Of a stretch of 64,000 bases of DNA, positions 1,500 to 34,477 are shown piece after piece (within the stretch, counting starts at the first letter, position 1; every line of letters begins with the position of its first letter). The position numbers and the translations under genes are program-made. The notes under the pieces were generated by a model. It saw nothing but the letters and a program-made list of their open reading frames with translations, searched no databases and was not told the DNA's origin. Origin of the DNA: Dimorphilus gyrociliatus (taxonomy: Eukaryota > Animalia > Annelida); assembly GCA_904063045.1 (NCBI GenBank), contig CAJFCJ010000026.1:350964-414963 (forward strand). Direction: 5' to 3'.

Positions 1500-1707
1500 G
1501 GGGCCGACATAAAACGTCCCCAAATGAGATTTTTCAGAGCAACATTTCGGATTGAAAAATGGGTGGCAGGAGTAAAGTAGCTTTTGATTCATAGTTAGGG
1601 GGGTTCCACCTAAGGGTTAGGAGTAATCAAAAAGGTTAAGGAGAGACAAGGACTAGGTTAGGGTTAGGGTTAAAAGCGTGCATTCGGGGACGTTTTCTGT
1701 AGTATCC
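1500..1707. mobile_element. Telomere-repeat-bearing Mutator-type MITE (subfamily 1)
   Basis: TIRs ggggccgacataaaacgtcccc / ggggacgttttctgtagtatcc; internal ggttagggttagggtt; 208 bp; near-identical copy at 22584-22791. Confidence 0.9.
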
Positions 1708-2330
1708 GTTGGCATCCGTCGGATGGCTTTCTGGTACAATTTTGTGGAAAATGACGAATTTTGAAGGAATTTAAACAAAGATTTAATTGAAAAAATTTAC
1801 TGTCTTTTTAAAACTCTGAAGAGTCTGACATCCGGTGTTGGCCTTCGCAGTCTACTGCTGGGGGCATCTCTCTTGGGATTCTAAAATTGAACTCATTCTT
1901 TTTCAGGTTCATACTCGTTAGTGCCAACTTTATCCTTAGTTCACTTCACCCACAATCCTTGCAAGGATTCGCTAAAACTGGCAAGCACAACAGCAAGCGT
2001 TGGTCTAACATGTTCTGCACCAAACTGCTCTGTGGGATCTCCTTTGATCTACCGAAATTCACGCAGCAATCATTAAATTTCCTCTCATCATTCCAATCTT
2101 TTCTCTCTTCTCTACGATAGAATTTTTCTTCTCATAGTTCAATCACTTGTTCTTTTGTACAAGATGATTTTTCTTTCAATAGCTTTATTAATCGTTCCTC
2201 CAAACGAGTTAACTCTTTTTGACCAGCTGATTATTCCTCTTCTACTCATTCATTTACGATAGGCAAGATTATCCTTTTAACCTTTGTGACTATCTCGTTT
2301 TCCAATTGATAACTATTATTAACAATCAAA
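1708..2330 (-). pseudogene. BEL/Pao gag fragment (zinc knuckles and coiled-coil)
   Basis: Minus-strand CEGQHRMSDSSEF..LNLCLNSFKIRH..NCTRKPSDGCQ aligns with gag CEGRHRMSECPEF..LNRCLNCLKIGH..NCTKKSCDGCH at 17043-18671. Confidence 0.85.
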
Positions 2331-2376
2331 AAGGGTTAGGTTAGGTTAGGGTTTGGGTACGTTTTCTGTCATATCC
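2331..2376. mobile_element. Right half of telomeric MITE
   Basis: gggttaggttaggttagggtttgggtacgttttctgtcatatcc, followed by gtcaaaata, which matches gtcaaaatg before 1500. Confidence 0.7.
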
Positions 2377-2764
2377 GTCAAAATAAATTCTTTGTCTTCC
2401 TGTGACACAAAATTTTACAGGCAGAAATATTTCCTTACTCTTGCTTGTTAATTGTATTTGGCAAATTAAATGAACATTCTCTTTTATCATAGAACTGAAA
2501 AACAGTCTAAAAAATTTTTTAGAAAAGGTTTTATTCTTACACCGAAAATGTATAGGAGAGCTGGTTAAAAATCTACTTAAAATAAATATGTACATCTTCC
2601 AGATAACCTTGCAATTTTGTTAACTTTCGCCTTTAATACATTCTCCTCCATTTTTCAAAAGTGTCCACATTCGTCATTTATAACCACTTCTCAATTTTGC
2701 CATATTTGTTGACCTTTACCTTCAATACATAACTCAGGGTTAACCACAGTAGAATACATTTTAC

Positions 2765-2972
2765 GGATGCGACAGAAAACGTCCACAAATCAGTGCTTTT
2801 ACCCTAACCCTAACACAGCCCTAAGCTGTACCTAACCTTTTCCAATACCCCTAACCCTTAGAGGAGACCCTCCTAAGTACAAATCAGTTGCTGTTTTCTT
2901 CTGCCTTAACCATTTCTCAAACCAAATTTTTGTCTTGAAATTTTTCATTTGTGGACGTTTTCTATCGACCCC
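2765..2972. mobile_element. Telomeric MITE (subfamily 2) with perfect 9-bp TSD
   Basis: TIRs ggatgcgacagaaaacgtccac / gtggacgttttctatcgacccc; TSD acattttac at 2756-2764 and 2973-2981; internal accctaaccctaac. Confidence 0.95.
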
Positions 2973-3064
2973 ACATTTTACATGTGCTATGTCAAGGGAA
3001 AGGTTTTACCACACTTTTAAAATTAAAAATCTGCCATTCTTGTCAACATTCATATTCTTAAAAC

Positions 3065-3600
3065 ATTATCACATATATTCATAATATTAACTGACTCAGA
3101 TAAATATTCATAATATGCAGTGATTCTCATGAATATTCATAATCTTAAATCACCCTCATGAATATTTATAATGTTATCACATTCTCATGAATATTCAAAA
3201 TATTTACAGATTCCTATTAATGTAATCAATATGAAGTGTATTTCAGATTTCTAAAGAAGTTGTCCATATAAAAAATTAACGCTAGAGAATTATAAAAAAA
3301 TTATATTTTTAGGCCATTCCTTAAATGCTGAAAATATTGACTGTTTTTAAATAACATTATATATAAGCTTCTTCTCATCAATATTCATAACTCTAGCCGA
3401 TTGTCATTTCCAAAATGATCTTAACTGCCAGTTATCAAAATCAAAAAAAAAACTCTGTTCGCATCAAAAAAACAAAAAAATGTGAGAATTCTCAATAAGA
3501 GTAACAATTTTAGACAATTCTTGTGCTTATTCACAGATTCAATCGATTTTCATCAATATTCTTATGTTTAACCTGTTGCCCATCAATATTCTTTAGTGTC
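3065..3600. repeat. Minisatellite with palindromic core ATGAATATTCAT
   Basis: Repeated ctcatgaatattcataa / catcaatattcata units about 30 bp apart. Confidence 0.7.
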
Positions 3601-3639
3601 TGGTTAACCCTAACCCTAACCCTAACTTTAAGTTTTTAT

Positions 3640-4180
3640 ATGTTCCACTTAGAACGAATATTGAGGTTCATTATGACATAGGTAACTCAAAGATTGATTA
3701 TATATACAGAGGAGCCTCTCCATACTCAAACTGAAAAGATCAGCTACTAGTATACCTGCTTCAAAATGCAATAGTGCACATTGTAAATTGCGCCCAACCT
3801 TGTGAAAGGGGGATCTTGGAGCTCCAAAGATGGTCATATCACCAAGAACATTGAGGAACCCCTCTGCTGAAAAACCGATCATGTCTTTTCATTGATGAAT
3901 GTACAAAATGCAACTGGGACCTGTCTAGCTTCACATCTTCACCCTTGTCAAGGATGTTCGGTTTCGTTGCCAAGAAAGCTAGCAGTAACAGAGAGAATGT
4001 TTAGGCTCTGACGGAACATATCAGAAAATGCGGAATCAACACAATAACCGTACTTCCTGTTATGGTTAAACCCCAAATGACCAAAATGGAAGTCAAGAAA
4101 GTGACTACTGTGATCCAATTTTTATATAATTGAGATTGGTTGTGTGTCACAAAGTTTATCTCATCCAATCCTCAGCTAGT
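3640..4180 (+). pseudogene. Unidentified decayed coding-like segment
   Basis: Higher GC than its flanks; one + frame reads protein-like with scattered stops; no motif recognised; bounded by (TAACCC)3 at 3605 and a MITE at 4187. Confidence 0.25.
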
Positions 4181-4186
4181 GTTTTT

Positions 4187-4393
4187 GGATGCTACAGAAA
4201 ACGTCCCCAAGTGCATGGTTTAACCCTAACCCTAACCTACCCCTTGTCTCTCTCTAACCTGTTTGATTACCCCTAACCCTTAGATGGAACCCCCCCTGAC
4301 TACAAATCAAAATCTACTTTACTTCTTTAGCCATTTTTCAATCTGAAATCTTGCTTTCAAAAATCTCACTTGGGGACGTTTTCTGTGGGCCCA
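4187..4393. mobile_element. Telomeric MITE (subfamily 1) with perfect 9-bp TSD
   Basis: TIRs ggatgctacagaaaacgtcccc / ggggacgttttctgtgggccca; TSD agtgttttt at 4178-4186 and 4394-4402. Confidence 0.95.
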
Positions 4394-4539
4394 AGTGTTT
4401 TTATGCTAAATAGTTTTTGTATGGTGATGTGTATGTAAACTTGTGTTTTGTGTTTTTGGATTCTTTGCCCTCACAACACCAGCATTTTGGCGGGTATAAA
4501 CCACTTTATTAACTAATTTTTTAGATCACTCTATAAAAA

Positions 4540-6480
4540 ACCACACTATAAAAAAATTTAAACTGTGTTAATTTTGTGATTGGAAATTTGATTTCAGTAT
4601 TGTGTTTTGTTTAGGGGAGGGGAGAGGGAAACCACACTAGAACACAATTTTAAAAGAATTTTTTAAAAGGTGAAGCAAAAAAGAATGTATTTTTTTAGTC
4701 TTGTTTTAGCAAGTTTTATTTTAGAACGCTTTTTGTTTGAGACGGGAACCACGTTAAAATATATTTTTAGGAAAATTTTTTCAAGATAAAGCATACATTG
4801 TAAAATGTCTTTTTTTGGATTTGGACGGGAACCACACTAAAAAGCAGTTTTATTCTTCATATAGGAACAGAAACCACATTAGAATACATTTTATTGAAAA
4901 ATATTATCATACGTCTAAAAATGTGTTGATGTTAAAAAGTTTTGTTTCTTTGAGAAAAGTTTAAAAAACTAGGTTATAGAAATTAAGGAAGGAAACTTTT
5001 AAATAAAGTAGGAAAAAGACTTTAATTTAATAGTCACCGTGAACATATATCTTAGCAATATGATGCGACGGTGAAGACAATTCAGTTACTAACATCGTAT
5101 ACGTAGGGAGCCACGTATGACGTTACGTTTTATAAAGGAGATCGTGGCCCTCTGTTGGCTGTTATAAACGTTACTTAGCGTAACTTGTTTAACAGGAACC
5201 GCTCTGAAAATTTATTATTTATTTTGAAAGAAACCATACTAATTACTAAAACTATTTGCCGTTGATTGTTACACGTAAAAAAAATATTAAAATGTATTTT
5301 AGCGTGGTTCCCCTCTAAGAGACAAATGAAAAGTCTGGGTTAGCACATTTGGAAAAATATTGGTGTGTTTCGTATTCGAAACAAAAATGTATCTTGTTCT
5401 GGTATGATTTTTACTTCAAATAATATCATTTGTTTTGTCTGAAAAAAAAGTAACCATACTGCGTTTGCATTTAAAATATTCCCTTTTTCAATCATTAGTA
5501 TGGTTGCTATCCCTCATCTTTTTGAAAGAATACAATTAATTGTGGATTACCCATTTAAAATTCAATTATGAATTTAATTTTTGTTTTTCTAAGCGGACCA
5601 GAAGATATATTATTTTTCATGGAACCATATTTCAAAATGTACTTTTCTCGAAAACTATAAAAAACATACTTGTCGGTAAGAAAACCACACTAATAAGTAT
5701 TTTTAAATGTAGTTAATTTTTTTAAAAAAATGGTATGAATGGAATTCCTTTCTCGAAACATACTAAAAAATTGAAAATTTGTCATAATATGGGTGCCTGT
5801 TTGAGAATAGAATACTATTGAAAATATATTCTATTGAAGGTCTGTAGTGTTAAAACTGTACCAAAACAATACAACATCTATCATATATTTCACTTTGTAG
5901 AGGGGACCAGACTAGAATATTTGTGCTTTTGTTTCGGAAAGGGAAACCACACATTAAAAGAAATTCTAAGACACTTGAGGGGAAACATTTTTTTAAGAAA
6001 ACTTTTAAAAATTATTTATATTTGGATGGGAACCTCACTAAACTACGAATAAGTTGGACTAACTAAAACACACTTAAAACTTAAAATCAACAATTTCCAA
6101 TGCTCTGAACTAGTACTGAAAGGAACCACACTAAAAAATTGCTGTCTACTTTTACTATTGTTTTAAGAATCAGTCTAATTATCAAGTGAGAAGATTGTGT
6201 TTCAAACAATAGAAAAAGTTAAAATTGTGTTTATACATAATATATTGCATTATCAACAGGATCGAAACCATACTACATAAATATTTAAATGGCTTCTTTT
6301 TTTAGTACTTTTTAATGTGTTCTTTTAACTTTAGCATGGTTACAGTTCCTTACATTTTTGAAACAAGGCTTTTAAAAGAAAACCTATTTTTAATGCCAAA
6401 ATATATTTACGGACATTTTATAATGTATTTTTTTGGATCGGGACAGAAACCACATTAATATATATTTTCAAAGCAATTTG
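4540..6480 (+). repeat. GGAACCACACTA minisatellite array (contains solo LTR)
   Basis: Many aaccacact / aaccatact units. Confidence 0.75.
4997..5194 (-). mobile_element. BEL/Pao solo LTR
   Basis: Highly similar to LTR 19268-19475; starts TGTTAAAC on the minus strand; flanks ggaaac / ggaacc (imperfect TSD). Confidence 0.85.
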
Positions 6481-6865
6481 CTGTCTCATTTCAAATCATT
6501 GTTCATTTTGGCTATTTGATTTGGTTACATTATAAAGTTACGTTATTTTCTTTTGTCAATAAGCATCTCTATTCGTTTTTTGTCTTATCAATAAAATTAT
6601 AAGGGATCAACAGAAGTCGCCCCTGAATAGTTATTTAACTATATAGTATACTTAGACAAAGCTTAATAAAGAATATACTTTTTTTTTCTTGAAGCAAACA
6701 GTTTAGAATTGAAAGAGTATAGTAACAAAAGTAAATATTTAATATAGGTGAAAAGTGGTTCAGACAGAAAATGTTCATAACAGAAAATGTCCAAAATATA
6801 ACAGTGAAAATAAGGTGAAAAAATAAAAAAAAACCGTTTCTTTCCCCTATGAAATTTGATAAAGG

Positions 6866-7160
6866 TCAAAACAGCAAACTGAACTGGAATGAAGAAGCTG
6901 AAGAAGCCTTTGATACCCTCAAGAGAGCTATGATAACACCTCCAATCCTACAAACATTTCTACCTAACCACTGATGCATCTGATTTTGCAGTTGGAGCTA
7001 TCTTAGAGCAAGAAACTGTTGGAGCTGATGGAAAGAAAACCAAGAGACCAGTTTCATTTGCATCAAAACTACTTATCAATTCACAGCTCAAGTATACTGC
7101 ATATCAGAAAGAAGCTTTTATTGTTTATTGAGCAACACAGAAGTTTTCAGATTACCTGAA
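6866..7160 (+). pseudogene. Ty3/gypsy RT-connection/RNase H fragment
   Basis: WNEEAEEAFDTLKRAM..PPIL / LTTDASDFAVGAILEQ / RPVSFASK..SQLKY..YQKE motifs. Confidence 0.9.
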
Positions 7161-7164
7161 AAAA

Positions 7165-7409
7165 AATTACCTGTCAAGGATTCATTTCTCCAAATGTTCT
7201 CCATCCATGGATTCTTAAAGATAAAAGGAGAGTTGAAGCAGGTGCCATTGCTTTTTCATTTTTAACTTTAAAAAAGAAAAAGCTTCTAAACTACTATTCA
7301 AGGAACTCATTTATACAATATTTACTTTTTTATTCTAAAATCATTTCATCTTCTCTATTCTTATTTAATTGTTTTTTTTTATATTATGTGGACATTTTCT
7401 GTCGGCCCC
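7165..7409 (+). mobile_element. MULE transposase fragment with right TIR
   Basis: KDSFLQMFSIHGFLKIKGELKQVPL; ends gtggacattttctgtcggcccc. Confidence 0.7.
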
Positions 7410-7428
7410 TTGAAAAGTACATGATACA

Positions 7429-7490
7429 GGATGCCACAGAAAATGCTGCCAAATGCATGATTTAACCCTAACCCTAACCTAACCTTGTAT
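7429..7490. mobile_element. Half telomeric MITE
   Basis: ggatgccacagaaaatgc...tttaaccctaaccctaacctaacc. Confidence 0.7.
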
Positions 7491-7919
7491 GCACTGTAAT
7501 GTTTTCTCTAATAATTGATACACTTCTTTTCAGACAAAAGTTTTTCATAGATGACAACTAAATTTTCTTCTCTCTACAGTTCATAAAAAAATTCATTTTT
7601 TGAAATAGCTAGGGCGACTTCTATCGTATTCAAATTATAACAGTACATATCTTTACAGCAGTCACGTGGCACCCTTTTTTTCGTGATTGAGAAAAGATGA
7701 TCGGGTTGGTCAAGGGATCGTAATGACATAAACTCTACATAGAGTATATTGTATTTCTGATATGAAAATTTTGTTTAAAATATGAAGAAAGTCAGAGTTT
7801 AAATTATTTTCTTACATTGATTTCAAGAGAAAGTTTAACTATAAAAATTTTATCATAAGATAATCCTAACTTTCTTAATTTTGATAAACTTCAAATAATT
7901 ACACTTTCAGTGAAATCTT

Positions 7920-8165
7920 CTTTTACAAAATGGAGTACACCAGTTCTATTTGACAGACATAATGACAAAAGTCATCTGATTCAATATTGCTAATTAGAAA
8001 ATGACTAAGAACTACTTCCTCATTATCAATATCCATTGAAGATATTTCAAAATTTTCTTCAAACATATCCTTAGTTTTAGAATGTTCATTACACCTTCTT
8101 AAATATAAACCTGGTAAACATATCCAATGAAGTTTATGCGAACAAAGAAGCCATTTGACTTGCTT
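7920..8165 (-). pseudogene. MULE transposase N-terminal fragment (PHD-like remnant)
   Basis: LCSHKLHWICL...MDIDNEEVV resembles CSLCHHKVHWACL...MDVDHEEVV of the element at 47029-52303. Confidence 0.55.
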
Positions 8166-8372
8166 GGGGTCGACAGAAAACGTCCACAAATGAGAAATTT
8201 CAAGACTAGATTTTGGATTAAGAAATGGTTAGGAAGCAGAAGAGAGCAACTGATTTGTACTTAGGAAGATCTCCTCTAAGGGTTAGGGGTAATGCAAAAG
8301 GTTAGGTACTGCCAAGGGCTGGGTTAGGGTTAGGGTAAAAGCACTCATTTGTGGACGTTTTCTGTCGCATCC
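8166..8372. mobile_element. Telomeric MITE (subfamily 2)
   Basis: TIRs ggggtcgacagaaaacgtccacaaatga / tcatttgtggacgttttctgtcgcatcc; degenerate TSD gacttgctt / gccttgctg (7/9); G4 motif GGGCTGGGTTAGGGTTAGGG at 8316-8335. Confidence 0.92.
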
Positions 8373-8522
8373 GCCTTGCTGTTTTTTGCTAATTTTCTTA
8401 CAACACCCATAACAGAGACTGACATTTTCATCAGATTCTTTCCTATAGTGTCTTTTGGGTGAAAAAATTTTAAAGCTATTTAAAAATAAGCAACAATTGT
8501 ATTTGCAGATAATATGACGGTA

Positions 8523-8592
8523 ATTGAAAAAGGTTAGGCTAGATATGGGTTAGGGTAAAACCATAGATTTATGGCCGTTTTCTACCACATCC
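8523..8592. mobile_element. Half telomeric MITE (subfamily 3)
   Basis: aaggttagg..gggttagggtaaaa..tttatggccgttttctaccacatcc matches the right end of 22139-22345. Confidence 0.75.
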
Positions 8593-8599
8593 AAAACAT

Positions 8600-10470: not shown

Positions 10471-10572
10471 TTTTGTGGTCAAAGTAAAAAATACTAGCAG
10501 ATTATTTTCTATATTCTATTAATGGCGACCGGTTGAAAAAGACAGCGAATAATTATTATACATGTATTTTAA

Positions 10573-10682
10573 GGATGCTGGACAAAATATCCCTTATTTT
10601 GAATTTTTATCCTAACCCTAACCCTAACCCTAACCCTAACTACACTAAATTTTACTCTCAAGTGACGTTTTGTCTCGACCAC
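10573..10682. mobile_element. Possible ~110-bp mini-MITE with (TAACCC)4
   Basis: ggatgctggacaaaatatccc ... gacgttttgtctcgaccac resemble the family TIRs; no clean TSD. Confidence 0.45.
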
Positions 10683-11309
10683 ATTGTATTTATCATAAAT
10701 ACAATTTCAAAATTTGTTTAACTCGTTATTTCAAGTACACTTGGTAATATTAAAATGTCTATAAAGTTTGACTCCTTTGTACAATTCTTAAAAGTAAATC
10801 ACCTAATGGAGAAGTTAGGATCAACTGCAAACAACCCCCACTAGAACACGCCTTCAAATCCTTCAACATTGGACACTAGTTTGGTAACTTGGCAATTACC
10901 ATTTGTACCAGTTTTTATAGTTAAAATCCCTTTTTTCATTGAATCTTTTTGAGACTTCTAACATCATTGACCTAAGCCAACATTGATTATCTATATCAGG
11001 GCAAAATAAGGCACTAATGAATATCAACTAAATACTACTCATCTGAAAATTTATATTACATAAAAAGAAATTATAGAACTCTTTACTTAGTTTCATTTCT
11101 AGTCAGTGATATTGTCATAGATGAGTAATTCTTTCTTTCTTTGTCTTTCTTTCTCCTTATATAGGTATAACATTGGGATTGTTAAATACTGTGCACACCT
11201 TCAGTAAACAATACAAATTCAATGTAAAAATAAAAAAGTTATATTAAGAAAATATTTGGTATCAAATATACATCAGATACGGTTCAAAAAGTACGGGATA
11301 CTATAGGTG

Positions 11310-11680
11310 ATAAAACTGCAATTTGTCTGGAAATGAGGGCTTCAAAACATTCAATAGAATTTCCTTGTTGGCATATATTGCGTCTATTGTGCATAAAGGA
11401 TTTTTCTAGAGACAATTGTCAATTTCCTTGTTTAGTTTGTAGACAAACATGTGAAATTCAAAATGAAAGCATTCGTTCTTATCAAAAGAAAAGGTTTAGG
11501 TTAGGGTTAGGGTTAGGGTAGAAAGAAAATAATAAAAAACATATGAGAGATAAATTAGGGTTAGATAATACAGAAGAATTTGATTTGATGTATAAATCTC
11601 ATTTGCATATTTACAAAGATTGTATACAAAATTAGAAAATGAAAAATGCAGATGATGCTTTAAAATCTATATGCAGAGCG
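11310..11680 (+). pseudogene. Decayed RING-finger (C3HC4-like) gene fragment interrupted by telomeric tracts
   Basis: TAICLEM...FPCWHILRLLCI...FPCLVCRQ; two ligand cysteines appear lost. Confidence 0.55.
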
Positions 11681-11935
11681 CTTAACCCTAACCCTAACCC
11701 TAACTCTAACCCTTTTTCAATCATTGAATCGTTTAAAATCAATTACTTTTTGTAATTTATAGGCTGAACAATGCGAATATATTTAATAATATTCTACAAA
11801 ACTCTTCAAAACATTCTCAATACTTAAATTAACAAGATAATCAATTTTCTTATCAAGTTGGAAAACCAATATTTCAAAATATAATTGAAAATTGTACGCA
11901 AATGAATCTCTGACACCATGAATTTCGATACGTCG

Positions 11936-12148: not shown

Positions 12149-14335
12149 CTCCCCGCCAAGAGGATGACAAAGTAACTGAATCCTCATTAAAAGGAGGATT
12201 TAATACTTCTTGTCCTGGGTCTTTCATAATGGCCGTCAGTGGTTTTGTAGAAATTGCATCTTCCGTGACAGCAAGTAGACTCCTCCAAACCTCATCTCTA
12301 AAATGATATGGAGCTCTGGGGCTTATGAAGCTCCACTTTCCATTAAATTTATTTGACACTTGGGTGAACGTTGCCGCATTATCTGACCTGATATTTATTA
12401 TAGGGCCTTTTAAATACCTCATTTTTAACAGAGCTAACTGAACGCTATCCTTACTCAAAGATTCAATTAGCTCCAAGGTAACGGCTTTTGTTTTCAAACA
12501 AATTCCTATGAGAACGTTCCTTTTTTCGCATTTTTAATTAAAAACGGTCCAAAAACATCTATTCCCCATCGATTCAAATGGAATAGGTTCTTCTATGATT
12601 TGATCCCTACAGGGCTGATTTGCGTTGTACTGGAATTTTCTGTTTTTTCTCCATTCTTCACACTCCTGACACTGGCCATAAACTTCATTCGCTAGAGCTA
12701 CCTCCGCAATTGTCCAAAATCGACGTCGCAATCTATGACGCTTGGCGTTAGGTCCAGAGTGACCAGTCCTCAAGTGAACGTACCTCAGTAATAATTTCGC
12801 CGCACTCATACTCTTATGAAGTAGTACTCTTGTTTCCTTGTTTCTTAGAACAACTTCCCATTGTCCCAATTAATTTCTGGACGTTTTTAACTTTTCCCTT
12901 GCCACAAGAGGTATAAGTTTCTGCTCTTCTGTGATTTTTCCGTTTATTACTAAGGTAAATTTAATTGGATTACCGGCTACTTCCTTCTTAAAATCCTCCT
13001 ATTGATCCCAAGGCAAGGATACCTTCCCCAAGAGGACTCTTTTCGTATTCTTATTTTCCATTATATTTTTTCAGCTCAAACCAATTTTCCTTTAATGATA
13101 AATCTTTTAACTTAGTTAATTGATCTGCAGGATTGTTATCTGTGGATACGTATTCCCATTGATGGTTGTCCGTGTGATTGAGAATTTTCTTTACTCTTTC
13201 TCTCTCGAAACGTACTAAAGGGATTGACATATTTTTAACCCTAACCCTAACCCTAAGCGTCCACATATACTCTGTAGGCAGAAGGGTTTCCTATATAATA
13301 TATTCCTATATATTGACTCCGTGATGAGGAATATAATTTACTATTGTAATATCTTTTGGTTAGGGAATTGCGATTTTCTCATTTAAGTATTCATTCATAA
13401 ATTCTCTCATCATATTCCTTTTCCAAGTCCGGATTTTTCTTAAAAGCTTTAAGTTGCTGTAACAGACGGTTTTCAGCCGTTTTCCGCGGGCAGAATTCTT
13501 TGAGGGTTCCGTTAGTAACCTCATTTATCAATAGCGGTGCTACGATTTTCTCATCCTCAATTATAGTTTTGTTTTCAAATCTTTTCGAGAGTATTTCGTC
13601 TTCTATGGATATTTTCATTTCCTTACTTTTGGGATTTTTAATTGCCATATTGCAATTAACATTTAGTTTGGCGTTTTTCTTGCCACCATAGCAAAACCAA
13701 CCCAGTTTATTTCTGATCAATGTCATTCCATTATGCAAGTTTTTTGAGTCTGTAGGATGCAATAACGAATAATAATCGTTACCTATTACCAATCCCACTC
13801 TCTTATTTTGAAGCTGAGGGATTTTGATGCCTCCGTCCTTAAATTCTTGTTCATCCACCATTTGCCTCGATCTGACAGCCATTTAGGTTCAATTTATACA
13901 AATTCGCAGTATGACGAATTACCCCAAGTCCATTTATAATCAGATCTGTCTGTCCGATAGATTTTACTTTCCACTTCCTCATTAAATCTTACCTTTGTTA
14001 TTATTTCACATTTGATTTAATTTTTCTGTCCAGTAAGTCTAACCTTTCTTCCAAACTATAAAGTTTTTGATCTAATAGTTCTGTGACTTGTTACAGAATG
14101 AATTTTCTTTAAATAACCTTTTATATCGCTCCTCTAGACGCAATATTTTGCCTTTAAATAGCATTATTAATTGTTCCTCCAAATGGATTAATTCTTCCTG
14201 TCGAGATGATTCTTCTTCTCGTACTGATTCATTTACGATAGGCAGGATTATCTTTTTAACCTTTGCGACTATTTTGTTTTCAAACTGATAACTATTATGA
14301 TGGAGGGCCGATAATCTATTAATTATTTGAAGCCA
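12149..14335 (-). mobile_element. BEL/Pao internal region, copy a (heavily deleted gag/PR/RT/RH/IN)
   Basis: IRSDNAATF, HxxxGHSG..FW..CxxC, WEYVSTDNNPAD, NYIPHHGV, VGLVIGND motifs; most of RT deleted at 13236. Confidence 0.9.
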
Positions 14336-17300
14336 ATCTTTTTCCAGTTATCTCTGGCTTTCTTACAGTTTTGCCAGTTTGCCATCAAGTCTCTATAATA
14401 CTTAATAAGAGTTTTTGGGCTTAGAACTTCTTGATCTGGGTCTTTCATAAGTGCCGGTAAGAGGTTTTGTGGAGACCGCTTCCTCAGCAACTGTGAGTAG
14501 ACTTCTCCAAATTTCGTCTTTAAAACAGTTCTTTAAATAAGGACGTAATATCCATTTCACTGTTCTGATTGATTGTTCCCACAAGCCTCCTTGATATGGA
14601 GCTCTAGGACTTAAAAACTTCCAATTCCCATTAAAATTCTTTGTAGCTTGGGCAAAGGTTGCTGCATTGTCTGATCTAATATTTGTTATAGGACCTCTTA
14701 AATATCTCATTCTTAATAGAGCTAGCTGAACACTGTTCTTGTTAAGAGATTCCATTAGTTCCAATGCAACAGCTTTTGTTTTCAAACACACTCCTATAAG
14801 GACATTCCTTTTATCACCATTTTTATTCGTGAATGGTCCAAAAACGTCTATTCCGATTGATTCAAAGGGAATCGGTTCACCAGTAATTTGATCCCTATAA
14901 GGTTGATTTCCATCATATTGAAACTTCTTGTTTTTCCTCCACTCTTCACATTCGTGACACTGATCGTAAACTTCGTTCGCTAACGTTACTTCTCCAATTG
15001 TCCAAAACAAACGCCTCAATCTATGACGCATGGCGTTAGGTCCAGAATGACCTGTTCTCAAATGCACATATCTCATGAGTACTTTCGCTGCACTCATGTT
15101 TTTATGCAGTAAAGTTCTTGTTTGTTTATTTCTTAGGACGACCTCCAATTGACCCAATTCATTTCTGGTCAATTTTAATTTTTCCATTGCTGGGGGAGGT
15201 ATAACTTTCTGTTTAATTGCGATTTTTTCGTTAATTAAATAGATAAATTTATTCGGATCACCCGCTACTTTTCTTTTAAAATCCTTCTCTTGCTCCCAAG
15301 GCTTTTCCCCAAGAGAACTTTTTGAACATTTTTTCTTTCCGTGGTATTTTCCAACTTAAACCAATTTTCCTTTAGGGAAAAATCTTTTAATTTTGTTAAT
15401 TTATCGGCTGGATTGTTCTCAGTGGGTACGTATTCCCATTGATAGTCATCTGTGTGATTAAGAATTTTCTTAACTCTTTCTCTCTCAAAACGTACTAAAG
15501 GGATCGATATGTTTTTGATATATGCCAGGACTGCTTTATTATCGGACAAGAATGTTGTTGTTTTCTTTTCCAATTTATAGGATTCAAACTCTAATGCTAG
15601 TTCAACACCTAATAAGGCCGCCATCAATTCTCTCCTCGGAGTCGACGATTTATTATCGGGATCGCCTTCCTTATTAAGGCGTGATTTCACTCCAATAATA
15701 TGCCAAGTTTTGTCTATAAAACCGTAAATAACTGCTCCATGACGATCCTTAGACGCATCTACCTATACCCGGTAAGCTGACGGGTTTCCAATATATCAAG
15801 GTAACTGAATTCTTTCGAGCAACTTTTTCGTTAGCATTTTCCATTCGTTTACGAATGGATCCGGGACTTTTGCATTCCAATTACTTGACTCCATATGACA
15901 ACATGCCTTTGACCATATAGTCTTAAACTCGGCTCTAATTGGCTCTATATAGTCAAGTGGGTCGAAAACTCTCATTAAAGCTGAATTCATTTCTCGATAT
16001 GACGGTTTCCAATTGCCACTCTAAGTAATCGTCCTTTGTATACTTGATTCCTAATATTCTTTCTGCCGTTGATTGATCTTCTCCAAATTTGGCAGCTAAT
16101 TCTGTTACATTAGAATCAAATTTAGTCAATTTAAAATAGGGCTTTAATGTCTCTTGCAAGTTTTTAGCCATTTGTTCTCATTCATCCAAATCATCACTTG
16201 ATTGCACCCAATTGTCGATATAGAAACTATTAGTAATTATTTCTTTCCATTCATGGTATAACTTTTCAGATTCTTCTATCAATTTTTGTAAGGATCTACA
16301 TGCTACGAAAGGAGAACCTTTTAAACCAAAGGTGTGTCTTGTTAAGACAAACTCCTTTATGTTTTCTTTGGTTTTATTAACTCCTTTTTCCCAATATAAA
16401 AATCCGCAATACTTATAATGCGACTTCAATAAATGGATTTGGTGAAACATTGCCTTTATGTCTGCAACAATGAGGTACCTTTTGAGACGAACCTTTATCA
16501 ATATTTTTCTAATGTTGTTGCTATTTTTTCGTTTAAATATTCATAAATTCTCTCATCATATTTCTTTTCCAAATCCGGATTATTCTTAAAAGCTTTAAGC
16601 TGCTGTAACAAACGGTTTTCTGCTGTTTTCCGCGGGCAGAATTCTTTGAGTGTTCCGTTAGTAACTTCATTTATTAGTAAAGGTGCTACAATTTTCTCAT
16701 CTTCAATTATAGTTTCCCTTTCAAACTTTTTTGAGAGTATTTCATCCTCTATTGATATTTTCGTTTCTTTACTTTTTGGGTTTTTAATTCAATATTGCAA
16801 TTAACTCGAATTTTAGTATCCTTTCTACTACTGTAACAAAACCAACCTAATTTGTTTTTGACCAAAGTCATTCCATTACCCAAGTTTTTAGAATCTGTGG
16901 GATGTAGTAACGAATAATAATCATTGCCCACTACCAATCCCACTCTTTTATTTTGAAGCTGGGGGATTTCGATGCTTCCAGACTTAAATTTTTGTTGATC
17001 CACTTTTGGCAAATGTTTAACACCATATGCCTCTATCTGGCATCAGTTTAAATTCAACCTATAGAAATTTGCAGTATGTCGAATTACCCCAAGTCCGTTT
17101 ATAACCAGATCTGTCTGTCCGATAGGTTTTACTTGCCACTTCTTCATCAAGTCTTCCCTTACTAGCGTAATGTCTGATCCAGTATCTCCTATTGCAACCA
17201 AATTTTGTCGTTTAGCATTAACCTTAATTTCGACTATATTTGCTGTTTTTGCTTTATTTTCTACAACTAGCAATGCATTTTCAATCTTTCTACAATTATG

Positions 17301-19267
17301 CAAAGCAGAATGGACTTGTTGATGGCACCCGTCACATGATTTTTTGGTACAATTTCTAGATTTATGACCAATTTTTAAACAGTTTAGACATCTGTTTAAT
17401 TTGGTTAATTTTTCTTTTCTTATAAGTTTACTGTCCCTTTCGAACTCCGGGCACTCTGACATCCTATGTCGGCCTTCGCAGTAATAACATGTTATTCTCC
17501 CAATCTGATGATCTTTCGGATAATCTTTATTTCTACCTTCATTCCTATGCACAGACTTTTGTGAATCGGGAATCGAAGAATATTGTAAATAGACTGCTTT
17601 ACTTTGCTGAGATTCTAAGAATTTAATCAACTCTATTTCAGGTTCATATTCATCTGTGCCAATTTTACTTTTAGTTCTTTTTACCCATAACTCCTTTAGT
17701 GGTTCGGTAAAATTACCAACTGCAACAGCAACCATTGGTCGGACCTGTTTTGCTCCAAACAATTTTATGGTACTTCTTATATATTCTGCGAGATTGATTA
17801 AAGTATCGCCGGTACTTATATCCAGTTTCCCGTAACCATGAATTCTGTTAACCATTTCCTCGTATTTGTCTATTCTGTTAAAGTGGCGATCTAGTCTCTC
17901 TAGAGCAGATTCAAAACTTCCGCTTGGATGGGAAGCATATTCTTGGATTAGAGTCTTTACTGATTCATCTAATCGTGACATCAAAGCTTCAAATTTAACA
18001 TAACTGTCAACATTCGGAAACTTCTCTGAAAATGTTCCTATTCGGCGTCTGAATACGTCATACTCTACAGGGTTTCCTCTGAATTCTGTTATTCGACCAA
18101 ATAAATCTTTAATTTCTTCCTCTGAGGATTTACTTCTGCTAAAGTTCATACAGCAATTACTTAGGTTTCCTTTCATATTCGATTTCATTTTTCCGTCCAG
18201 CAACTCTAGCTTTTCTTCCAAACCATAAAGTTTTTTATCTAATAACTCTGTAACTTGTTCCTTTATACAGAACGAGTTTTCTCTAAATAACCTTTTATAT
18301 CGCTCCTCTAGACGCAATATTTTGCCTTTAAAAAGGTTTATTAATTGTTCCTCCAAGTGAATTAGTTCTTCCTGTCGAGATAATTCTTCTTCTCGTACAG
18401 CTTCATTTATGATAGGCAGGATTATCTTTTTAACCTTTGCGACGATTTCGTTTTCATACTGATAACTATTATGTTGGAGGACTGATAGTCTATTAATTAT
18501 TTCTTTTGATTTATCCTCCAAATCCTTTTTCTCCAGACTTCCGATTTTGGTAGCTCTGAGTTTATTGAATTTGAATCTTCGTAATCTTCTAAAGGAGGGA
18601 ATTCTTCTTCGAAAGATCTTTGTTCCAAAACGTGAGTTTCTTTTGATTTGAATTTTGTCTCTTTCATCCAAAATTCTGAATTAAAGGGTTTCTTTACAAA
18701 CTTCGCTGTTTGTAACCAACCGTTATCATTGTCCTCTTCCTTTGGAACATATAATCCATCTTTAATATTCTCCTCCATTTTTTCTAACCAGCTTCCGATT
18801 TCGTTAAGATCTGAGGAACAATACATTCCAACTTTCTCTCTTGTCCAAATTAAGATGTCCTTAACGTACCAAATTTTAGCTAGAACTTTGGCCCTTGTGT
18901 GGCTCTTTCTTGCTTAAATCCTTAAAAGAGGAGTTTTTTGGTGTAACAACCTTGAGACTAACGCACTTTTTAATTGAGATGGCAATATTGAATCTTCGAA
19001 TTCATCAGAATTTATATTACTCGCCATTTTAATTTTCAAAAATTTTCCAACGGTCAACGTTCTATCTTCCCAACGGTTATAAATACCTTTAATTCTCGAT
19101 TATTGAAAATATTCTCTTCTACCGAACAATTAGAAATATTCTTAACTCTCAACGGATAAGATATTCTCTATTTTCGAACGTAGGAACAATCTAAATTCTC
19201 CTTCCTGAATTGTCCCGAAAACGTAAAACGAATTTTGTTACTTTTGAGAACTTTGTATTGTCTTCAC
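14336..19267 (-). mobile_element. BEL/Pao internal region, copy b (gag-pol broken by frameshifts and deletion)
   Basis: Gag with three knuckles CYYCEGRHRMSEC, CLNCLKIGHKSRNC, CDGCHQQVHSALH; PR AIGDTGS; RT ADIKAMFHQI, FGLKGSPF, FYIDN; RH PRRELMAA, NPAD; IN GIDVFGP, SDNAATF, APYQGGLWE. Confidence 0.95.
17043..18826 (-). pseudogene. BEL/Pao gag-protease reading frame (frameshift near 18500)
   Basis: ORFs 18497-18826 and 17043-18671; DUF1759-like FRGNPVEY..KFEALMSRL..ALERLDRHF. Confidence 0.85.
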
Positions 19268-19475
19268 TTTTGAATAAAGTAGGAGAAAGACTTTAATTTA
19301 ATAATCACCGTGAACATGTATCTTAGCGATATATGCGAAGGTGAAGAAAATTCAGTTACTGATCGTATACGCAGGGAGCCACCTTGCGGGAGTTCGCATG
19401 ACGTTACGTTTTATAAAGGAGATCGTGGCCCTCTGTTGGCTATTATAAACGTTAATTAGCGTAACTTATTTAACA
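19268..19475 (-). mobile_element. BEL/Pao 5' LTR, copy b
   Basis: Sense TGTTAAATAA...TTATTCAAAA, immediately followed by GTGAAGACAAT (19257-19267). Confidence 0.9.
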
Positions 19476-20106
19476 AAAATGGAGGTAAAGTTTCTGGCAG
19501 GTATTTGAAATAATGTAAAAATTCCAACTTGACTGAATAATTTATCACGTATCCTTTATTTTGGATGACAAGACGTCATCTCTTTTTTATGCAGCTATAT
19601 AAATCTTTTACATTGTCTTCAGAAATCAAAAAAATATTCCTCTTCCTCCATCTTGTTTTGTCTTAAAAAAGATTAAGATACTTTTAAAGTGTGGCATCGT
19701 GCTCCATCCTGTTCAAAGATGTTCTCCGTCTTATAGATAGGAAGTAGACACTCTTTTTAAAGTTGAGATATATTTCTCTCAGTCTATTCATTGCTTTTGT
19801 CGATAATGGCCTAAAATGTTAAATTATTTAATTAGTATGGTTTCTTTCTTAAGTATATCATATACAAAACGATAACAAATTATTTATAACAAAACACACT
19901 TTCTATCATAAAGCCATAGTGTGCTGTTAAGGGAATAGAAACCACATTAAAGTAATATGTGTTATTTCTTTCTAAAATTAAGCATTTGAGAAAAATTTTA
20001 AAACGCTTTGATCTGAACAGGACGGGAACCATACTATATATATTTTAATTCCCTTGTGAAAAAAATATTAACTTAATCATTTAATGTGTATTATAGGTGT
20101 TGAGGG

Positions 20107-20403
20107 GGACAGAAACCACACTAAAATACCCGTGAAAAAAGCGCAAAAAATTTAAAAAAGTTTTATTATTTTGGACAGGACGGGAACCAGTTTAGAAAAA
20201 GATGTATAATTTAATAATTAAAGAGAGTATTCATTTTAAATTGAAATGAAAAATCGAAAGTTAAAAGGTTTTTTAGTTCAACGAAAATGAAAATTTATCT
20301 TAAAATTCCCAAAAGTAACAATCAAAACATTGCTTTTACATTGAATAGGGGGCTGGAGCCGTACTAAAATTTATTTCAATATCTGTTGTTTTTGAAGGGG
20401 CAG
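20107..20403 (+). repeat. ~297-bp near-identical direct duplication (copy 1; copy 2 at 24662-24958)
   Basis: ggacagaaaccacactaaaatacccgtg ... tttgaaggggcag present twice with few differences. Confidence 0.9.
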
Positions 20404-22138
20404 TAACTTTTGAATAAAGTAGGATGAACTTTATTTTAAACGTCACCGTAATCAAGGATCTTTATTTACAAGATCTTGAGTCGGTGAAGACAATTAAGCT
20501 ACTGATAGTCTAATAACTGGTAAGAGCCACCTGGCGAGGGTGTATAACCCGTTTTAATATATCGCAAAGCCCTCTGTTGGCTGTACAAGTACTATCGAAC
20601 AACGAATCTTATGAGATTGTTTGTACCCTATCATAAATTATTTAACACTCCCCGCCAAGAAGGTGACAAGCATCTGAGTCCTCACCAAAGTACACAAAAA
20701 AAACATACATATAACAAAGAATCCAATGAAAAAGTTATTACTTACGCTTATGCGAATTTCTTTCCCGTCTGAGCTCCTGACTTCAGCATTCCTAATTTTC
20801 CCATCATCTGACTTGATCAACTGAGAAATTTTCGCTTTTTCATACTCAGCTCGGGTTTTTATCATTGTTGATTAACACTTTTTGCCCAACCTTTCTTATC
20901 TTCTCTAACTTCTCTCTATACCTCTTCCAACATTTCTTTATTCCATCTAAAGCAAATTTTCTTCCAATTTTCTCTGGCTCTCCTAGAATTTTGCCAATTC
21001 GCCACTAAGTCTCGATGATACTTAGCAAGTGTTTTTGGACTTGGTACTTCTTGATCTGGATCCTTCATAAGGGCGGTGAGAGGTTTTGTTGAAATTGCTT
21101 CCTCTGCGATGGCCAGCAGACTCCTCCAAATATTATCCCTAAAATGATTCTTTAGATAAGGACGTAAAATCCATTTAACTGTTCTAATTGAACGCTCACA
21201 AAGACCTCCCTGATACGGTGCTCTGGGGCTAATGAAACTCCATTTTCCATTAAATTCCTTTGATGCTTGGGTGAAAGTCGCCGCATTATCCGATCTAATA
21301 TTTCTCATAGGACCTCTTAAGTATCTTATCGTTAATAGCGCTAGCTGAACACTGTTTTTATTCCATGATTCGATCAATTTTAACGCAACAGCTTTTGTCT
21401 TTAAGAAAATTTTCATGAGGACATTCATTTTTTCACCATTTTTATTTGTGAATGGTCCAAAGACATCTATTCCTATTGAACGGGATAGGTTCGCCGATGA
21501 CTTGATCCCTGCAAGGCTGATTTGCGTCATACTTACTTTGTTTTTTCTCCACTTCTCGCTCTCCTGACACTGGCCGTAAATCTCGTTTGCTAATAATACC
21601 TCCCCGATTGTCCTAAACAGACGCCGTAATCTATGACGCTTGGAGTTGACGCTTTATCATCAGGATCGCCTTCCTAACCTAACCGTAACCCTTTCTTAGC
21701 CATCTACTCCAATTCTTCTAAGTCGTCGCTTGTTTGCACCCAATCGTCCATGTAGAAATTCTTAGAAATTACTTCTTTCCATTCAGGAAGTAAGTTTTTT
21801 GATTCTCCAATCAACCTTTGTAAAGATCTGCATGCCAGGAAGGAAGAGCCCTTTAGAGTCTAGTTAATACAAACTCTTTAATGTTTTCCTTAGTTTTATT
21901 AACTCCTTTCTCCCAGTATAAGAACCCGCAATACTTATAATGCGTTTTCAATAATATTTTTTCAGACGAATCTTTTTACTATTTCTCGGATATTATTCTT
22001 TGGGGATTCCATTGGTAACTTCATCTATCAATAGTGGTGCTGTAATTTTGTCATCTTTGAATCTTTTGGAAAGCACTTCATCTTCTATGAATATTTTTAT
22101 CTCCCTGTTTTTTGGATTTTTAATTGCAACATTGCAAT

Positions 22139-22345
22139 GGGACCTGTCGAAAACGGCCATACATAAAATATTTGAAGTTTAGATTTCAAGCTGGGAAATG
22201 GTTATGAGGAATAAGATAAGTATTGATATGTACTTAGGTTTGTCCCATCTAAGGGTTAGGGGCATTGAAAAAGGTTAGGCAAAACCAAGGGCTAGGTTAG
22301 GGTTAGGGTAAAACAGTAAATTTATGGCCGTTTTTTACCACATCC
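22139..22345. mobile_element. Telomeric MITE (subfamily 3) inserted in BEL pol, perfect 9-bp TSD
   Basis: TSD cattgcaat at 22130-22138 and 22346-22354; flanks rejoin to the sequence seen at 13640-13690. Confidence 0.95.
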
Positions 22346-22583
22346 CATTGCAATTGATGATTAGTTTAGCATTTTTTTCTGCCACCATAACAAAACCAGC
22401 CCAATTTGTTTCTAATCAATGTCATTCCATTATCTAAGCTTTTTGAGTCTGTGGGGTGCAATAAAGAGTAATAATCGTTACCCACTACCAATCCCACTCT
22501 CTTATTCTGCAGGTGAGGGATTTTAATACTTCCATCAGTTTACAAAAAAATTCTTTCTATGAATACATTGACCTGTCAAAATG

Positions 22584-22791
22584 GGGGCCGACATAAAACG
22601 TCCCCAAATGAGATTTTTCAGAGCAACATTTCGGATTGAAAAATGGGTGGCAGGAGTAAAGTAGCTTTTGATTCATAGTTAGGGGGGTTCCACCTAAGGG
22701 TTAGGAGTAATCAAAAAGGTTAAGGAGAGACAAGGACTAGGTTAGGGTTAGGGTTAAAAGCGTGCATTCGGGGACGTTTTCTGTAGTATCC
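22584..22791. mobile_element. Telomeric MITE, twin of 1500-1707
   Basis: Near-identical, within the duplication ~1452-2290 / ~22535-23370. Confidence 0.9.
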
Positions 22792-24044
22792 GTTGGCATC
22801 CGTCGGATGGCTTTCTGGTACAATTTTGTGGAAAATGACGAATTTTGAAGGAATTTAAACAAAGATTTAATTGAAAAAATTTACTGTCTTTTTAAAACTC
22901 TGAAGAGTCTGACATCCGGTGTTGGCCTTCGCAGTCTACTGCTGGGGGCGTCTCTCTTGGGATTCTAAAATTGAACTCATTCTTTTTCAGGTTCATACTC
23001 GTTAGTGCCAACTTTATCCTTAGTTCACTTCACCCACAATCCTTGCAAGGATTCGCTAAAACTGGCAAGCACAACAGCAAGCGTTGGTCTAACATGTTCT
23101 GCACCAAACTGCTCTGTGGGATCTCCTTTGATCTACCGAAATTCACGCAGCAATCATTAAATTTCCTCTCATCATTCCAATCTTTTCTCTCTTCTCTACG
23201 ATAGAATTTTTCTTCTCATAGTTCAATCACTTGTTCTTTTGTACAAGATGATTTTTCTTTCAATAGCTTTAGTAATCGTTCCTCCAAACGAGCTAACTCT
23301 TTTTTTAACCAGCTGATTATTCCTCTTCTACTCATTCATTTACGATAGGCAAGATTATCCTTTAGCCCTTGTGTGACTATTTCCCGCATAGATCCGTCTA
23401 AGTGGGGCTTTCTTATGTAATAACTTTGTAACTAAGGCGCTTTTTAGTTGAGACGGCAATATGGAATCTTTGGAATCATCACAATTCATATTACTTGCCA
23501 TTCTTAAATTTAAACATTTAACGGTCAAAACGTTCTTTTTCTCAAACGATCAAAAACGTTCTTTTCTTCTAAACAGTTAGGAATATTTTCAACTCCAAGC
23601 TATCAAAAAGATTCTCTTCTTCCAAAACGATTAGAGATATTCTTAACTCCAAACGATTAAGATATTCTCTTCTTTCGAATGTAAAGAATAATACAATTTA
23701 TCCTTACCGAATTGTCCCAAAAACGTACTCGAATTCGTTTAATATACTCCAAAGTATTTTAAACTACTTTTCTTGTTGACGACTTCGTATTGTCTTCACT
23801 TTAGAATGAAGCAGGATAAGCTTTATTTCAATAGTCAACGTAATCAAAAAGATGTTGAGGCGGTGAAGACAATTCACCTAATGACTATTTGTCGGTAAGA
23901 GCCACCTGGCGAGGGTATATAAGACGTTTTAATATACCGCAAAATAACCAAAATAAGGGGATTGTTAAACATTGTGCACATCCTCAGAAAAGAATATAAA
24001 TCCAATTTAAAAACAAAAGAGTTATATTAAGAAAATAATCCCCT

Positions 24045-24223
24045 TAACCCTAACCCTAACCCTAACCCAGCCCTTAGCTGTACCTAACCTTTTGCATTAC
24101 CCCTAACCCTTAGAGGAGACCCTCCTAAGTACAAATCAGTTGCTGTTTTCTTCTGCCTAACCATTTCTCAATCCAAAAACTTGTCTTGAAATTTCTGATT
24201 TGTGGACGTTTTCTGTCGACCCC
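24045..24223. mobile_element. Telomeric MITE truncated at its (TAACCC)4 tract
   Basis: Body and right TIR gtggacgttttctgtcgacccc match 2765-2972; left TIR absent. Confidence 0.88.
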
Positions 24224-34430: not shown

Positions 34431-34477
34431 TTGTTCACATTAAAATAAGGAAAATGAGAGAAAGCTTAAAAAGTTAC

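Follow-up and report, generated by a model that had tools for sequence, protein, structure and literature searches.

A Mutator-like MITE family with an internal telomeric repeat array in Dimorphilus gyrociliatus

MITE copies and related MULEs in the window

The window, which is the whole 64,000-nt stretch of Dimorphilus gyrociliatus DNA analysed here, holds a group of short MITE copies together with MULEs that share their TIR core. We located the MITE copies with nhmmer, using a profile built from five window copies, and recovered six full copies and five partial ones. Together with the related MULEs, they are as follows.

1500..1707, + strand: full MITE, subfamily 3; no TSD; within a segmental duplication shared with 22584
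2765..2972, − strand: full MITE, subfamily 2; perfect 9-bp TSD ACATTTTAC at 2756-2764 and 2973-2981
4187..4393 (end 4392/3), − strand: full MITE, subfamily 3; perfect 9-bp TSD AGTGTTTTT
8166..8372, + strand: full MITE, subfamily 2; TSD 7/9, perfect 24-nt TIRs
22139..22345, + strand: full MITE, subfamily 1 (TIR core with GGCC); perfect 9-bp TSD CATTGCAAT
22584..22791, + strand: segmental-duplication copy of 1500, not an independent insertion; no TSD
24045..24223, − strand: truncated MITE, consensus positions 1-173, right TIR missing (nhmmer match 24051-24223)
8522..8592, + strand: partial MITE, consensus positions 125-207, subfamily 1 type (nhmmer)
7429..7487, − strand: partial MITE, consensus positions ~146-207, only the right TIR and the telomeric tract (nhmmer)
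2326..2376, + strand: partial, rearranged MITE; degenerate tract fused straight to the right TIR; adjoins a retrotransposon fragment
10573..10680, − strand: mini derivative (~108 bp) in which a diverged left TIR is followed by 25 bp, (TTAGGG)5 and the right TIR
6757..7409, + strand: related non-autonomous MULE of 653 bp; same TIR core, TSD 8/9, no telomeric tract
33455..35769, + strand: coding MULE, left end and MULE-domain exon; same TIR core, at 33461
47029..52300, + strand: outer coding MULE; TIR core GACAGAAAACGGCC, inverted core pair at 47041/52284

The six full copies lie where the original prediction had placed them, but those at 1500 and 22584 sit inside a segmental duplication that spans 0.9 kb or more (1441-2349 and 22525-23370, 98-100% identity) and were therefore counted as a single insertion. 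The mini derivative at 10573 (nhmmer match 10573-10632) was absent from the earlier list. The perfect 9-bp TSDs reported for three copies were seen at 2765, 4187 and 22139.

The MITE is 207 bp long and non-coding, with no ORF within it, and has TIRs of ~25 bp and an AT-rich target. Its termini read GGGG(Y)CGACAG... and ...CTGTCG(Y)ATCC, each end extending 6 bases beyond the TIR core described earlier; the inverted termini correspond to GGGG(Y)CGACAGAAAACGTCC... and its reverse complement, and the 24-nt TIR is perfect in copy 8166. Within the window, the core GACAGAAAACGKCC had 19 matches at ≤2 mismatches, compared with 0.27 expected.

This core had been said to be common to the coding MULEs, and the inverted pair at 47041/52284 indeed flanks the outer coding MULE, in which the 14-nt core is identical to that of the MITE and the left-end similarity spans ~45 nt. 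Another MULE is nested inside this element at 47414-50332. The MULE-domain exon of the outer element (51396-51632) scored 21.4 bits for PF10551, under the 27.6-bit cut-off and covering half the domain, and that of the other listed coding MULE (35611-35769) scored 29.4 bits. Elements sharing the MITE termini also encode FLYWCH fingers. No clean 9-bp TSD was found for the outer coding MULE in a comparison with empty-site paralogues. The telomeric segment described below is absent from the window's coding MULEs, which have only termini in common with the MITE; among them, no autonomous element with subterminal sequence identical to the MITE was found. Read by eye, the interior of the 653-bp MULE resembles a captured retrotransposon pol fragment.

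The telomeric array and its spread across the genome

A TTAGGG segment had been described beside one TIR in all copies, and GGTTAGGGTTAGGGT is present in every full window copy, ~36 nt from one end. Across the window, TTAGGGTTAGGG had 43 matches at ≤1 mismatch, compared with 0.2 expected. Consensus positions ~96-171 (~75 bp) form a degenerate telomeric array that closes with a perfect (TTAGGG)2.5; the perfect tract lies at positions 156-171 of 207, inward of the right TIR and 36 nt from the right end. Local alignment of the array to (TTAGGG)n gave scores of 23-30, whereas 300 shuffled sequences scored no higher than 17-19. TTAGGG arrays are located at contig ends, and the MITE tract consists of the telomere repeat of its host.

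We then characterized a sample of 100 copies, consisting of the best BLAST matches to three window copies rather than a random draw. The three subfamilies recognised in the window were recovered in this sample, with divergence of 4-9% within subfamilies and consensuses that differ from each other at 20-23% of positions overall. TTAGGGTTAGGG was retained in 85/100 copies, and none of the 100 had three units. A canonical G4 had been attributed to subfamily 2. The motif exists (loops ≤7, GGGCTGGGTTAGGGTTAGGG), not in one subfamily but in two of three, where 47/67 copies carry it, compared with 0/33 copies of the third. Because one equally successful subfamily lacks the motif, G4 is not the feature under constraint.

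The initial genome search returned 511-627 candidates. A MITE-specific 19-mer had 329 exact genome matches, compared with 0 for the control, and was found in 67-81% of the sampled copies; we estimate the copy number at ~400-500 genome-wide. The matches are balanced between strands (167 forward, 162 reverse), and the copies cluster in transposon-rich islands, where long telomeric arrays are found as well. Each of the three subfamilies includes identical copies whose flanks and TSDs differ, indicating that transposition has been very recent.

Genome-wide, 878 perfect tracts of at least two units were counted, and 329 of them carry the MITE-specific 19-mer, which puts the share of the family at 37% or more. 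The predicted spread of interstitial telomeric tracts by the MITE is thus borne out, and no other single source contributes as many short tracts of this kind to the genome. Spread by mobile elements has been proposed in reviews, argued mostly from co-location, and one review names transposition only as one possible route for interstitial telomeric sequences (PMC6410037). In the literature we found no paper describing this MITE family. A published repeat survey of the species lists MITEs for Mariner only (PMC7854359), and the family is apparently absent from that description.

Truncated copies and conservation of the GGTTAG cores

Partial copies had been said to end in or near the repeat. Truncation points fell within the telomeric array in 8/12 cases, compared with 41% expected (p=0.064), a result that is suggestive only. 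Tract expansion was seen only in truncated copies (3/12 vs 0/100 full copies, p=0.001); the truncated copy at 24045..24223 ends in the telomeric tract, there expanded to 4 units (24045-24068). Telomeric tracts occur in the window at a density of about one per 3 kb. One of them, a non-MITE insert of 28 bp at 37823-37850, stands in place of ~10 bp present in three paralogues, and another lies at a ~1-kb deletion junction at 13236. As the paralogues of 37823-37850 have no tract, de novo telomeric addition occurs here. Events of apparent capture (the 653-bp relative) and of fill-in (37823-37850 and 13236) are both visible in the same window.

The halves could also stem from ordinary recombination, or from microhomology-mediated deletion, involving telomere-like motifs at scattered sites (in two MITEs, or in a MITE and another tract), with telomerase healing uninvolved. 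Motif-to-motif internal deletions are visible in copy L059 and in window copy 2326, and the density of tracts in the window would supply many partners. We regard this route as possible but doubtful, because expanded tracts of 4-5 units beside unrelated sequence are unexpected under simple deletion, and the clean insertion with its small deletion at 37823-37850 also speaks against it. Broken MITE copies may offer ends on which telomerase can prime.

The five GGTTAG cores are identical between the three subfamily consensuses in 30/30 columns, whereas other internal columns are identical in 79/127 (Fisher p=4.9e-6) and TIR columns at 0.68, below the motif cores. Among inserted copies, private variants numbered 60/3000 in motif columns and 238/12500 elsewhere (p=0.71), corresponding to post-insertion rates per site of 0.020 and 0.019 (ratio 1.05), equal base by base. 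The check on whether the repeat is more conserved than the rest of the element therefore has two answers: the cores are far more conserved between consensuses, but they decay neutrally after insertion. This combination points to constraint in propagating lineages and not to maintenance by the host. From conservation between only three consensuses, we infer a putative cis-role of the cores in propagation of the MITE.

Alternatively, though in our view this is unlikely, the segment was captured once and hitch-hikes with no role for element or host, and its conservation reflects shared ancestry or chance. Such a neutral passenger would account for the neutral decay of the motif in inserted copies, for the seemingly unrelated captured DNA borne by MULEs of the same TIR type, and for the absence of the segment from coding MULEs that share the TIR core. 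It does not readily explain consensuses that differ at 38% of other internal columns but at 0/30 motif columns (p=5e-6), nor TIRs that are themselves less conserved than the motif. In addition, the tract length of 2.5 units is fixed in 100/100 intact copies, and the tract is kept even by derivatives stripped of most of their interior.

Exaptation by the host appears highly improbable. The original prediction had raised possible binding of shelterin-like proteins or action as fragile or healing sites; under exaptation, inserted copies would bind such proteins and be kept as regulatory, heterochromatin or healing sites. The identity of the tract with the organism's telomere repeat, the G4 motif in two of three subfamilies, the confinement of tract expansion to truncated copies and the clustering of copies in islands alongside long telomeric arrays all count in favour of this proposal. 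However, the tract shows no excess conservation after insertion, the perfect 12-mer has already been lost in 15% of copies, and the subfamily without the G4 motif is equally abundant. The enrichment of truncations is not significant, and most tract-associated truncations come from the window, which is itself unusually rich in non-MITE telomeric tracts.

Superfamily, known counterparts and a proposed mechanism

The TSDs were examined in the same 100-copy sample, in which 67/100 full copies had a perfect 9-bp TSD and 86/100 had one with ≤2 mismatches; the control, a flank shifted by 9, yielded one pair at ≤2 mismatches. Mutator-like TSDs range from 9 to 11 bp. These duplications, and the TIR common to MULE-domain elements of the window, uphold the assignment to the Mutator type. 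The TIRs are short beside the classical 100-200-bp Mutator TIRs, but we can set aside with near certainty both a different superfamily making 8-9-bp duplications (Merlin, hAT) and an identity as a dispersed satellite or SINE, as duplications are strictly 9 bp long, elements encoding PF10551 MULE-domain and FLYWCH exons have the same terminal 14-45 nt, and the copies are dispersed among unrelated flanks and have neither a poly(A) tail nor a Pol III promoter. Overall, the most probable reading is a non-autonomous Mutator-like (MULE) MITE family that was active recently, with a telomeric motif serving its own propagation and not a host-maintained function.

Like Mutator MITEs and Pack-MULEs, the element has a 9-bp TSD and TIRs common to MULE-transposase elements, is non-coding, has a high copy number and enters an AT-rich target; its sister element at 6757-7409, bounded by the same TIRs, apparently holds captured DNA of a retrotransposon, as Pack-MULEs hold captured host DNA. 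It departs from these elements in its short TIRs and in its cargo, an array of degenerate units of the host's telomere repeat. Pack-MULE cargo normally drifts, whereas the motif cores of the MITE are invariant between subfamilies.

In ciliate TBE/Tec elements, telomeric repeats form the extreme termini. The analogy to these elements drawn in the original prediction stands insofar as both are DNA transposons tied to the host's telomeric repeat. It is a loose one: the MITE belongs to the Mutator superfamily, its tract is internal and near one end only, and its termini are GGGG.../...ATCC. Telomere-associated Penelope-like retroelements of the Athena/Coprina type, described for a fungus (PMC4522978), likewise are mobile elements bearing 1-3 units of the species' telomere repeat; there the repeat is 3'-terminal, and the elements are subtelomeric and oriented to the chromosome end. 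Identity with such retroelements was rejected, as the MITE has no ORF, possesses TIRs and TSDs, and lies in both orientations (167 vs 162).

Telomerase also leaves short interstitial telomeric sequences where double-strand breaks are repaired (PMC2246262, PMC7215372, PMC8537989). Such sequences, exemplified in the window by 37823-37850 and the 13236 junction, resemble the MITE tract in being short, perfect and internal, and may represent the route by which the tract entered the MITE progenitor. Unlike them, the MITE tract comes with the element, enclosed by TIRs and 9-bp duplications, and has a constant size of 2.5 units. A break-repair tract stands where paralogues are uninterrupted and transposon hallmarks are absent; this describes 37823-37850 and does not describe the MITE tracts.

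The MITE has no coding capacity and would presumably be mobilised in trans by transposases of MULEs that have the same terminal 20-45 nt, to which the identical copies at unrelated loci lend indirect support. The telomeric segment likely entered the progenitor by Pack-MULE-like capture between MULE ends or by telomerase-type fill-in at an internal break; no single donor locus can be named for the array, and fill-in is an equally good origin. In the most plausible form of a cis-role, the cores would be bound by a host factor whose specificity for TTAGGG is fixed and which would help a very short element synapse its ends or reach permissive chromatin. A rather speculative version, to which we assign a low probability, is that a TRF/Myb-like (or similar) host protein is exploited by the MITE through these sites, while the cores of broken copies would prime telomerase. 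Such a protein could bend the 207-bp element for end synapsis, or steer it to telomere-like chromatin islands. The transposon family would then rely on the telomere machinery while itself seeding new telomeric DNA within chromosomes.

In a compact animal genome, these findings describe a defined, recently active cut-and-paste element that carries the telomere repeat as fixed cargo. As repair junctions in the window also bear telomeric tracts, the system could serve to study how telomerase acts on internal breaks in non-vertebrates. Invariance of the cores in propagating lineages, set against decay after insertion, raises the testable question of whether a transposon uses a telomere-binding host factor for transposition.

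MITE copies in the window and the genome

We searched the window with a profile built from five of its own copies, which recovered six full and five partial MITE copies, among them a partial copy (10573-10632) missing from the original prediction.

MITE copies in the window (profile matches)
1500, full copy
2765, full copy
4187, full copy
8166, full copy
22139, full copy
22584, full copy
24051-24223, partial copy
8522-8592, partial copy
7429-7487, partial copy
2326-2376, partial copy
10573-10632, partial copy

The element in fact begins with GGGG(Y)CGACAGAAAACGTCC... and finishes with ...GGACGTTTTCTGTCG(Y)ATCC. These boundaries give copies 2765, 4187 and 22139 perfect 9-bp TSDs, and the TSD of copy 8166 matches at 7/9 positions. 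Copies 1500 and 22584 sit in a block, ≥0.9 kb long, that is duplicated with 98-100% identity (1441-2349 vs 22525-23370), and therefore represent one insertion, not two. The copies claimed for the window were thus confirmed, with their termini and this count corrected. The segmental duplication also holds a retrotransposon fragment, and two sampled loci, L025 and L026 (C22:814417 and C22:833374), form a comparable duplicate pair, inverted. On the minus strand, 10573-10680 is a mini derivative of ~108 bp consisting of a diverged left TIR, 25 bp, (TTAGGG)5 and a right TIR. Its right end is resembled by a segment of another sampled locus (L063:2825-2877), and the two possibly represent a fourth MITE lineage. 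Across 2600-4500, contigs of four public sequencing runs gave no usable RNA evidence and revealed no empty-site joint at either copy 2765 or copy 4187; the copies in this interval had a summed depth ~150-400x that of the flanks, a value that is not a copy number.

The window corresponds to C26:350964-414963 in an assembly of 77.9 Mb and 349 contigs, and its G+C content is ~30%. In the published genome of D. gyrociliatus (73.8 Mb), DNA transposons include MULE and Mariner elements, closed chromatin holds transposon islands, and MITEs are reported for Mariner only (PMC7854359). Searches of the organism's own genome with three queries gave 511-627 first-look candidates apiece, and 87 loci were taken outside the window. 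Applying nhmmer to these loci and the window yielded 126 matches, 99 of them full length. Among 100 full copies, 67 had a perfect 9-bp TSD and 86 had one with ≤2 mismatches, against one such pair in a shifted-flank control; positions 2-8 of the TSD target were 80-90% A+T.

The same 100 copies fell into three subfamilies (n = 36, 33 and 31), with mean pairwise distances of 0.088, 0.080 and 0.041 inside subfamilies and 0.20-0.23 between their consensuses. Each subfamily contained copies that were identical despite unrelated flanks and different TSDs, indicating that all three moved very recently; L025 and L026, also identical, are segmental duplicates. The diagnostic 19-mer GGTTAGGGTTAGGGTWAAA occurred 329 times in the genome (control, 0) and was present in 81/100 sampled and 12/18 incidentally found copies, so the family numbers roughly 400-500 copies. 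These copies are strongly clustered, with 0.107 extra copies per kb in the locus flanks vs a genome average of ~0.006, and large contigs hold few of them.

Relation to coding MULEs

Two inverted matches to the 14-nt TIR core, at 47041 and 52284, lie at the ends of a coding MULE that carries a second one nested within it.

Coding MULEs in the window
47029-52300, outer MULE, bounds from comparison with empty-site paralogues
47414-50332, inner MULE nested in the outer, 137-bp TIRs (95.6% identical), FLYWCH ORF

Over ~45 nt, the left end of the outer MULE resembles the MITE, with no match further inside. The element encodes FLYWCH fingers and an exon with a MULE-domain signature (PF10551, 21.4 bits). 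Another element shares the TIR core (at 33461), and its PF10551 exon scores 29.4 bits, which exceeds the cut-off. Pfam searches on single ORF fragments of the coding MULEs returned FLYWCH alone, and the MULE domain was detected only in stop-free exon frames. Empty-site paralogues of the outer MULE were found at two sampled loci, L013 and L015, and at window ~54176-54305; compared with L013 and L015, the element had no clean 9-bp TSD, the overlap being 1-4 nt at most. The strict 9-bp TSD of the MITE, perfect in two-thirds of full copies, and a TIR core common to PF10551 elements place the family in Mutator, as originally proposed.

Structure and conservation of the telomeric segment

Contig starts bear long (TTAGGG)n arrays oriented as expected (among them C27:317-388 and C162:279-332), which identifies TTAGGG as the organism's own telomere repeat. 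Long telomeric arrays also lie inside large contigs, at C23:755867-756527 (+), C23:757758-758684 (-), C5:4469949-4470364 and C22:795604-796019, and MITE copies occur 10-40 kb from such arrays. The two C23 arrays are oriented head to head and could mark either an ancient fusion of two ends or a scaffold join.

Each of the three MITE consensuses has five GGTTAG cores (positions 62, 116, 135, 157 and 163), all oriented alike, and no core was found in the opposite orientation in 100 copies. The stretch at ~96-171 matches (TTAGGG)n in register, with alignment scores of 23-30 vs a maximum of 17-19 in 300 shuffles, which makes the interior's right half a degenerate telomeric array. The array comprises ~12 units, the last 2.5 of them perfect; TTAGGGTTAGGG was retained in 85/100 copies, and 0/100 had three units.

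Across the three subfamily consensuses, 30/30 motif columns were identical, compared with 79/127 other internal columns and 68% of TIR columns (Fisher p = 4.9e-6). We used private variants, found in ≤2 copies within a subfamily, as a proxy for mutation after insertion. They occurred at 0.0200 per site for the motif vs 0.0190 for other positions (p = 0.71), and base-by-base rates were equal (motif/elsewhere: G 0.028/0.026, A 0.012/0.015, T 0.012/0.011). These results indicate that the cores are constrained in transposing lineages and unprotected after landing. The cores are thus more conserved than the rest of the MITE between subfamilies but not within inserted copies, and the proposed host function, shelterin binding and fragility gain no support from conservation after insertion. 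The TIRs, which are needed for transposase recognition, diverge between subfamilies while the cores stay invariant, which leads us to infer that a factor with fixed TTAGGG specificity recognises the cores. Most simply, it would be a host telomere-repeat-binding factor.

The G4 motif noted in subfamily 2 was present there but not confined to it: in its loop-limited form it occurred in 47/67 copies of subfamilies 1 and 2 together and in 0/33 of subfamily 3. We rejected G4 as a selected feature, as the subfamily lacking it is equally abundant and equally recently active.

Telomeric tracts at probable breaks and interstitial telomeric DNA

Partial copies had been noted as tending to end within or near the repeat-rich segment. 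Of 12 internal breakpoints read from partial copies, 8 fell inside the array (positions 110-173, 41% of the interior; p = 0.064), which is suggestive only. Expanded telomeric tracts were seen in three truncated or rearranged copies vs 0/100 intact ones (p = 0.001).

Expanded telomeric tracts
24045-24068, 4 units
10611-10640, 5 units
L078 (sampled locus), extra units at the second core

Extension at a break fits these expansions better than replication slippage, which is unlikely given that none of 100 intact copies departs from 2.5 units. Most of the cases lie in the window, which is itself unusually rich in non-MITE tracts, so the main cause may be past breakage and repair in this region, not a property of the MITE. 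About 10 such tracts occur in the 64-kb window, whereas 276 kb of further MITE-bearing loci contain 5.

Non-MITE telomeric tracts in the window
37823-37850, clean insertion of a 28-bp tract in place of ~10 bp found in three paralogous copies
13236-13256, tract plus ~110 bp in place of ~1 kb relative to a paralogue, at a deletion junction in a BEL-like copy
39400-39422, tract
39772-39785, tract
3605-3626, tract
11499-11519, tract
11683-11704, tract
25973-25987, tract
29149-29170, tract
31863-31879, tract

At two of the tracts, homology to paralogous transposon copies stops. Taken together, the tracts resemble products of telomerase-type break repair; the events at 37823-37850 and 13236-13256 match what has been described in mammals for telomerase-mediated repair of breaks (PMC2246262, PMC7215372). 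Beside the (TTAGGG)3.5 at the BEL deletion junction, 13257-13275 is a short piece like the inner MULE TIR (…TGTGGACG). If this resemblance is real, a broken MULE end was joined to telomeric repeats there.

The window also contains a 653-bp non-autonomous MULE.

6757-7409, non-autonomous MULE, same TIR core, 8/9 TSD GTGAAAAGT / TTGAAAAGT

Its interior, read by eye, resembles an LTR-retrotransposon pol fragment, suggesting that MULEs with this TIR core capture foreign DNA; the element looks like a Pack-MULE-type capture. Capture and tract insertion at breaks, both seen in the window, could be the source of the telomeric segment of the MITE.

One review names transposition of mobile elements among the ways in which interstitial telomeric sequences could arise (PMC6410037). 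In the full-text literature, we found no MITE or DNA transposon with telomeric-repeat cargo; most subscription journals, Repbase and Dfam lay outside this scope, and absence is unproven. In the genome, TTAGGGTTAGGG occurs 1422 times and (TTAGGG)3 544 times. Since each k-unit tract contributes k-1 matches to the former total and k-2 to the latter, subtracting the two leaves 878 perfect tracts with two or more units, fragments of long arrays included. Of these, 329 (37%) come from the MITE 19-mer alone, which bears out the proposal that the MITE spreads interstitial telomeric repeats.
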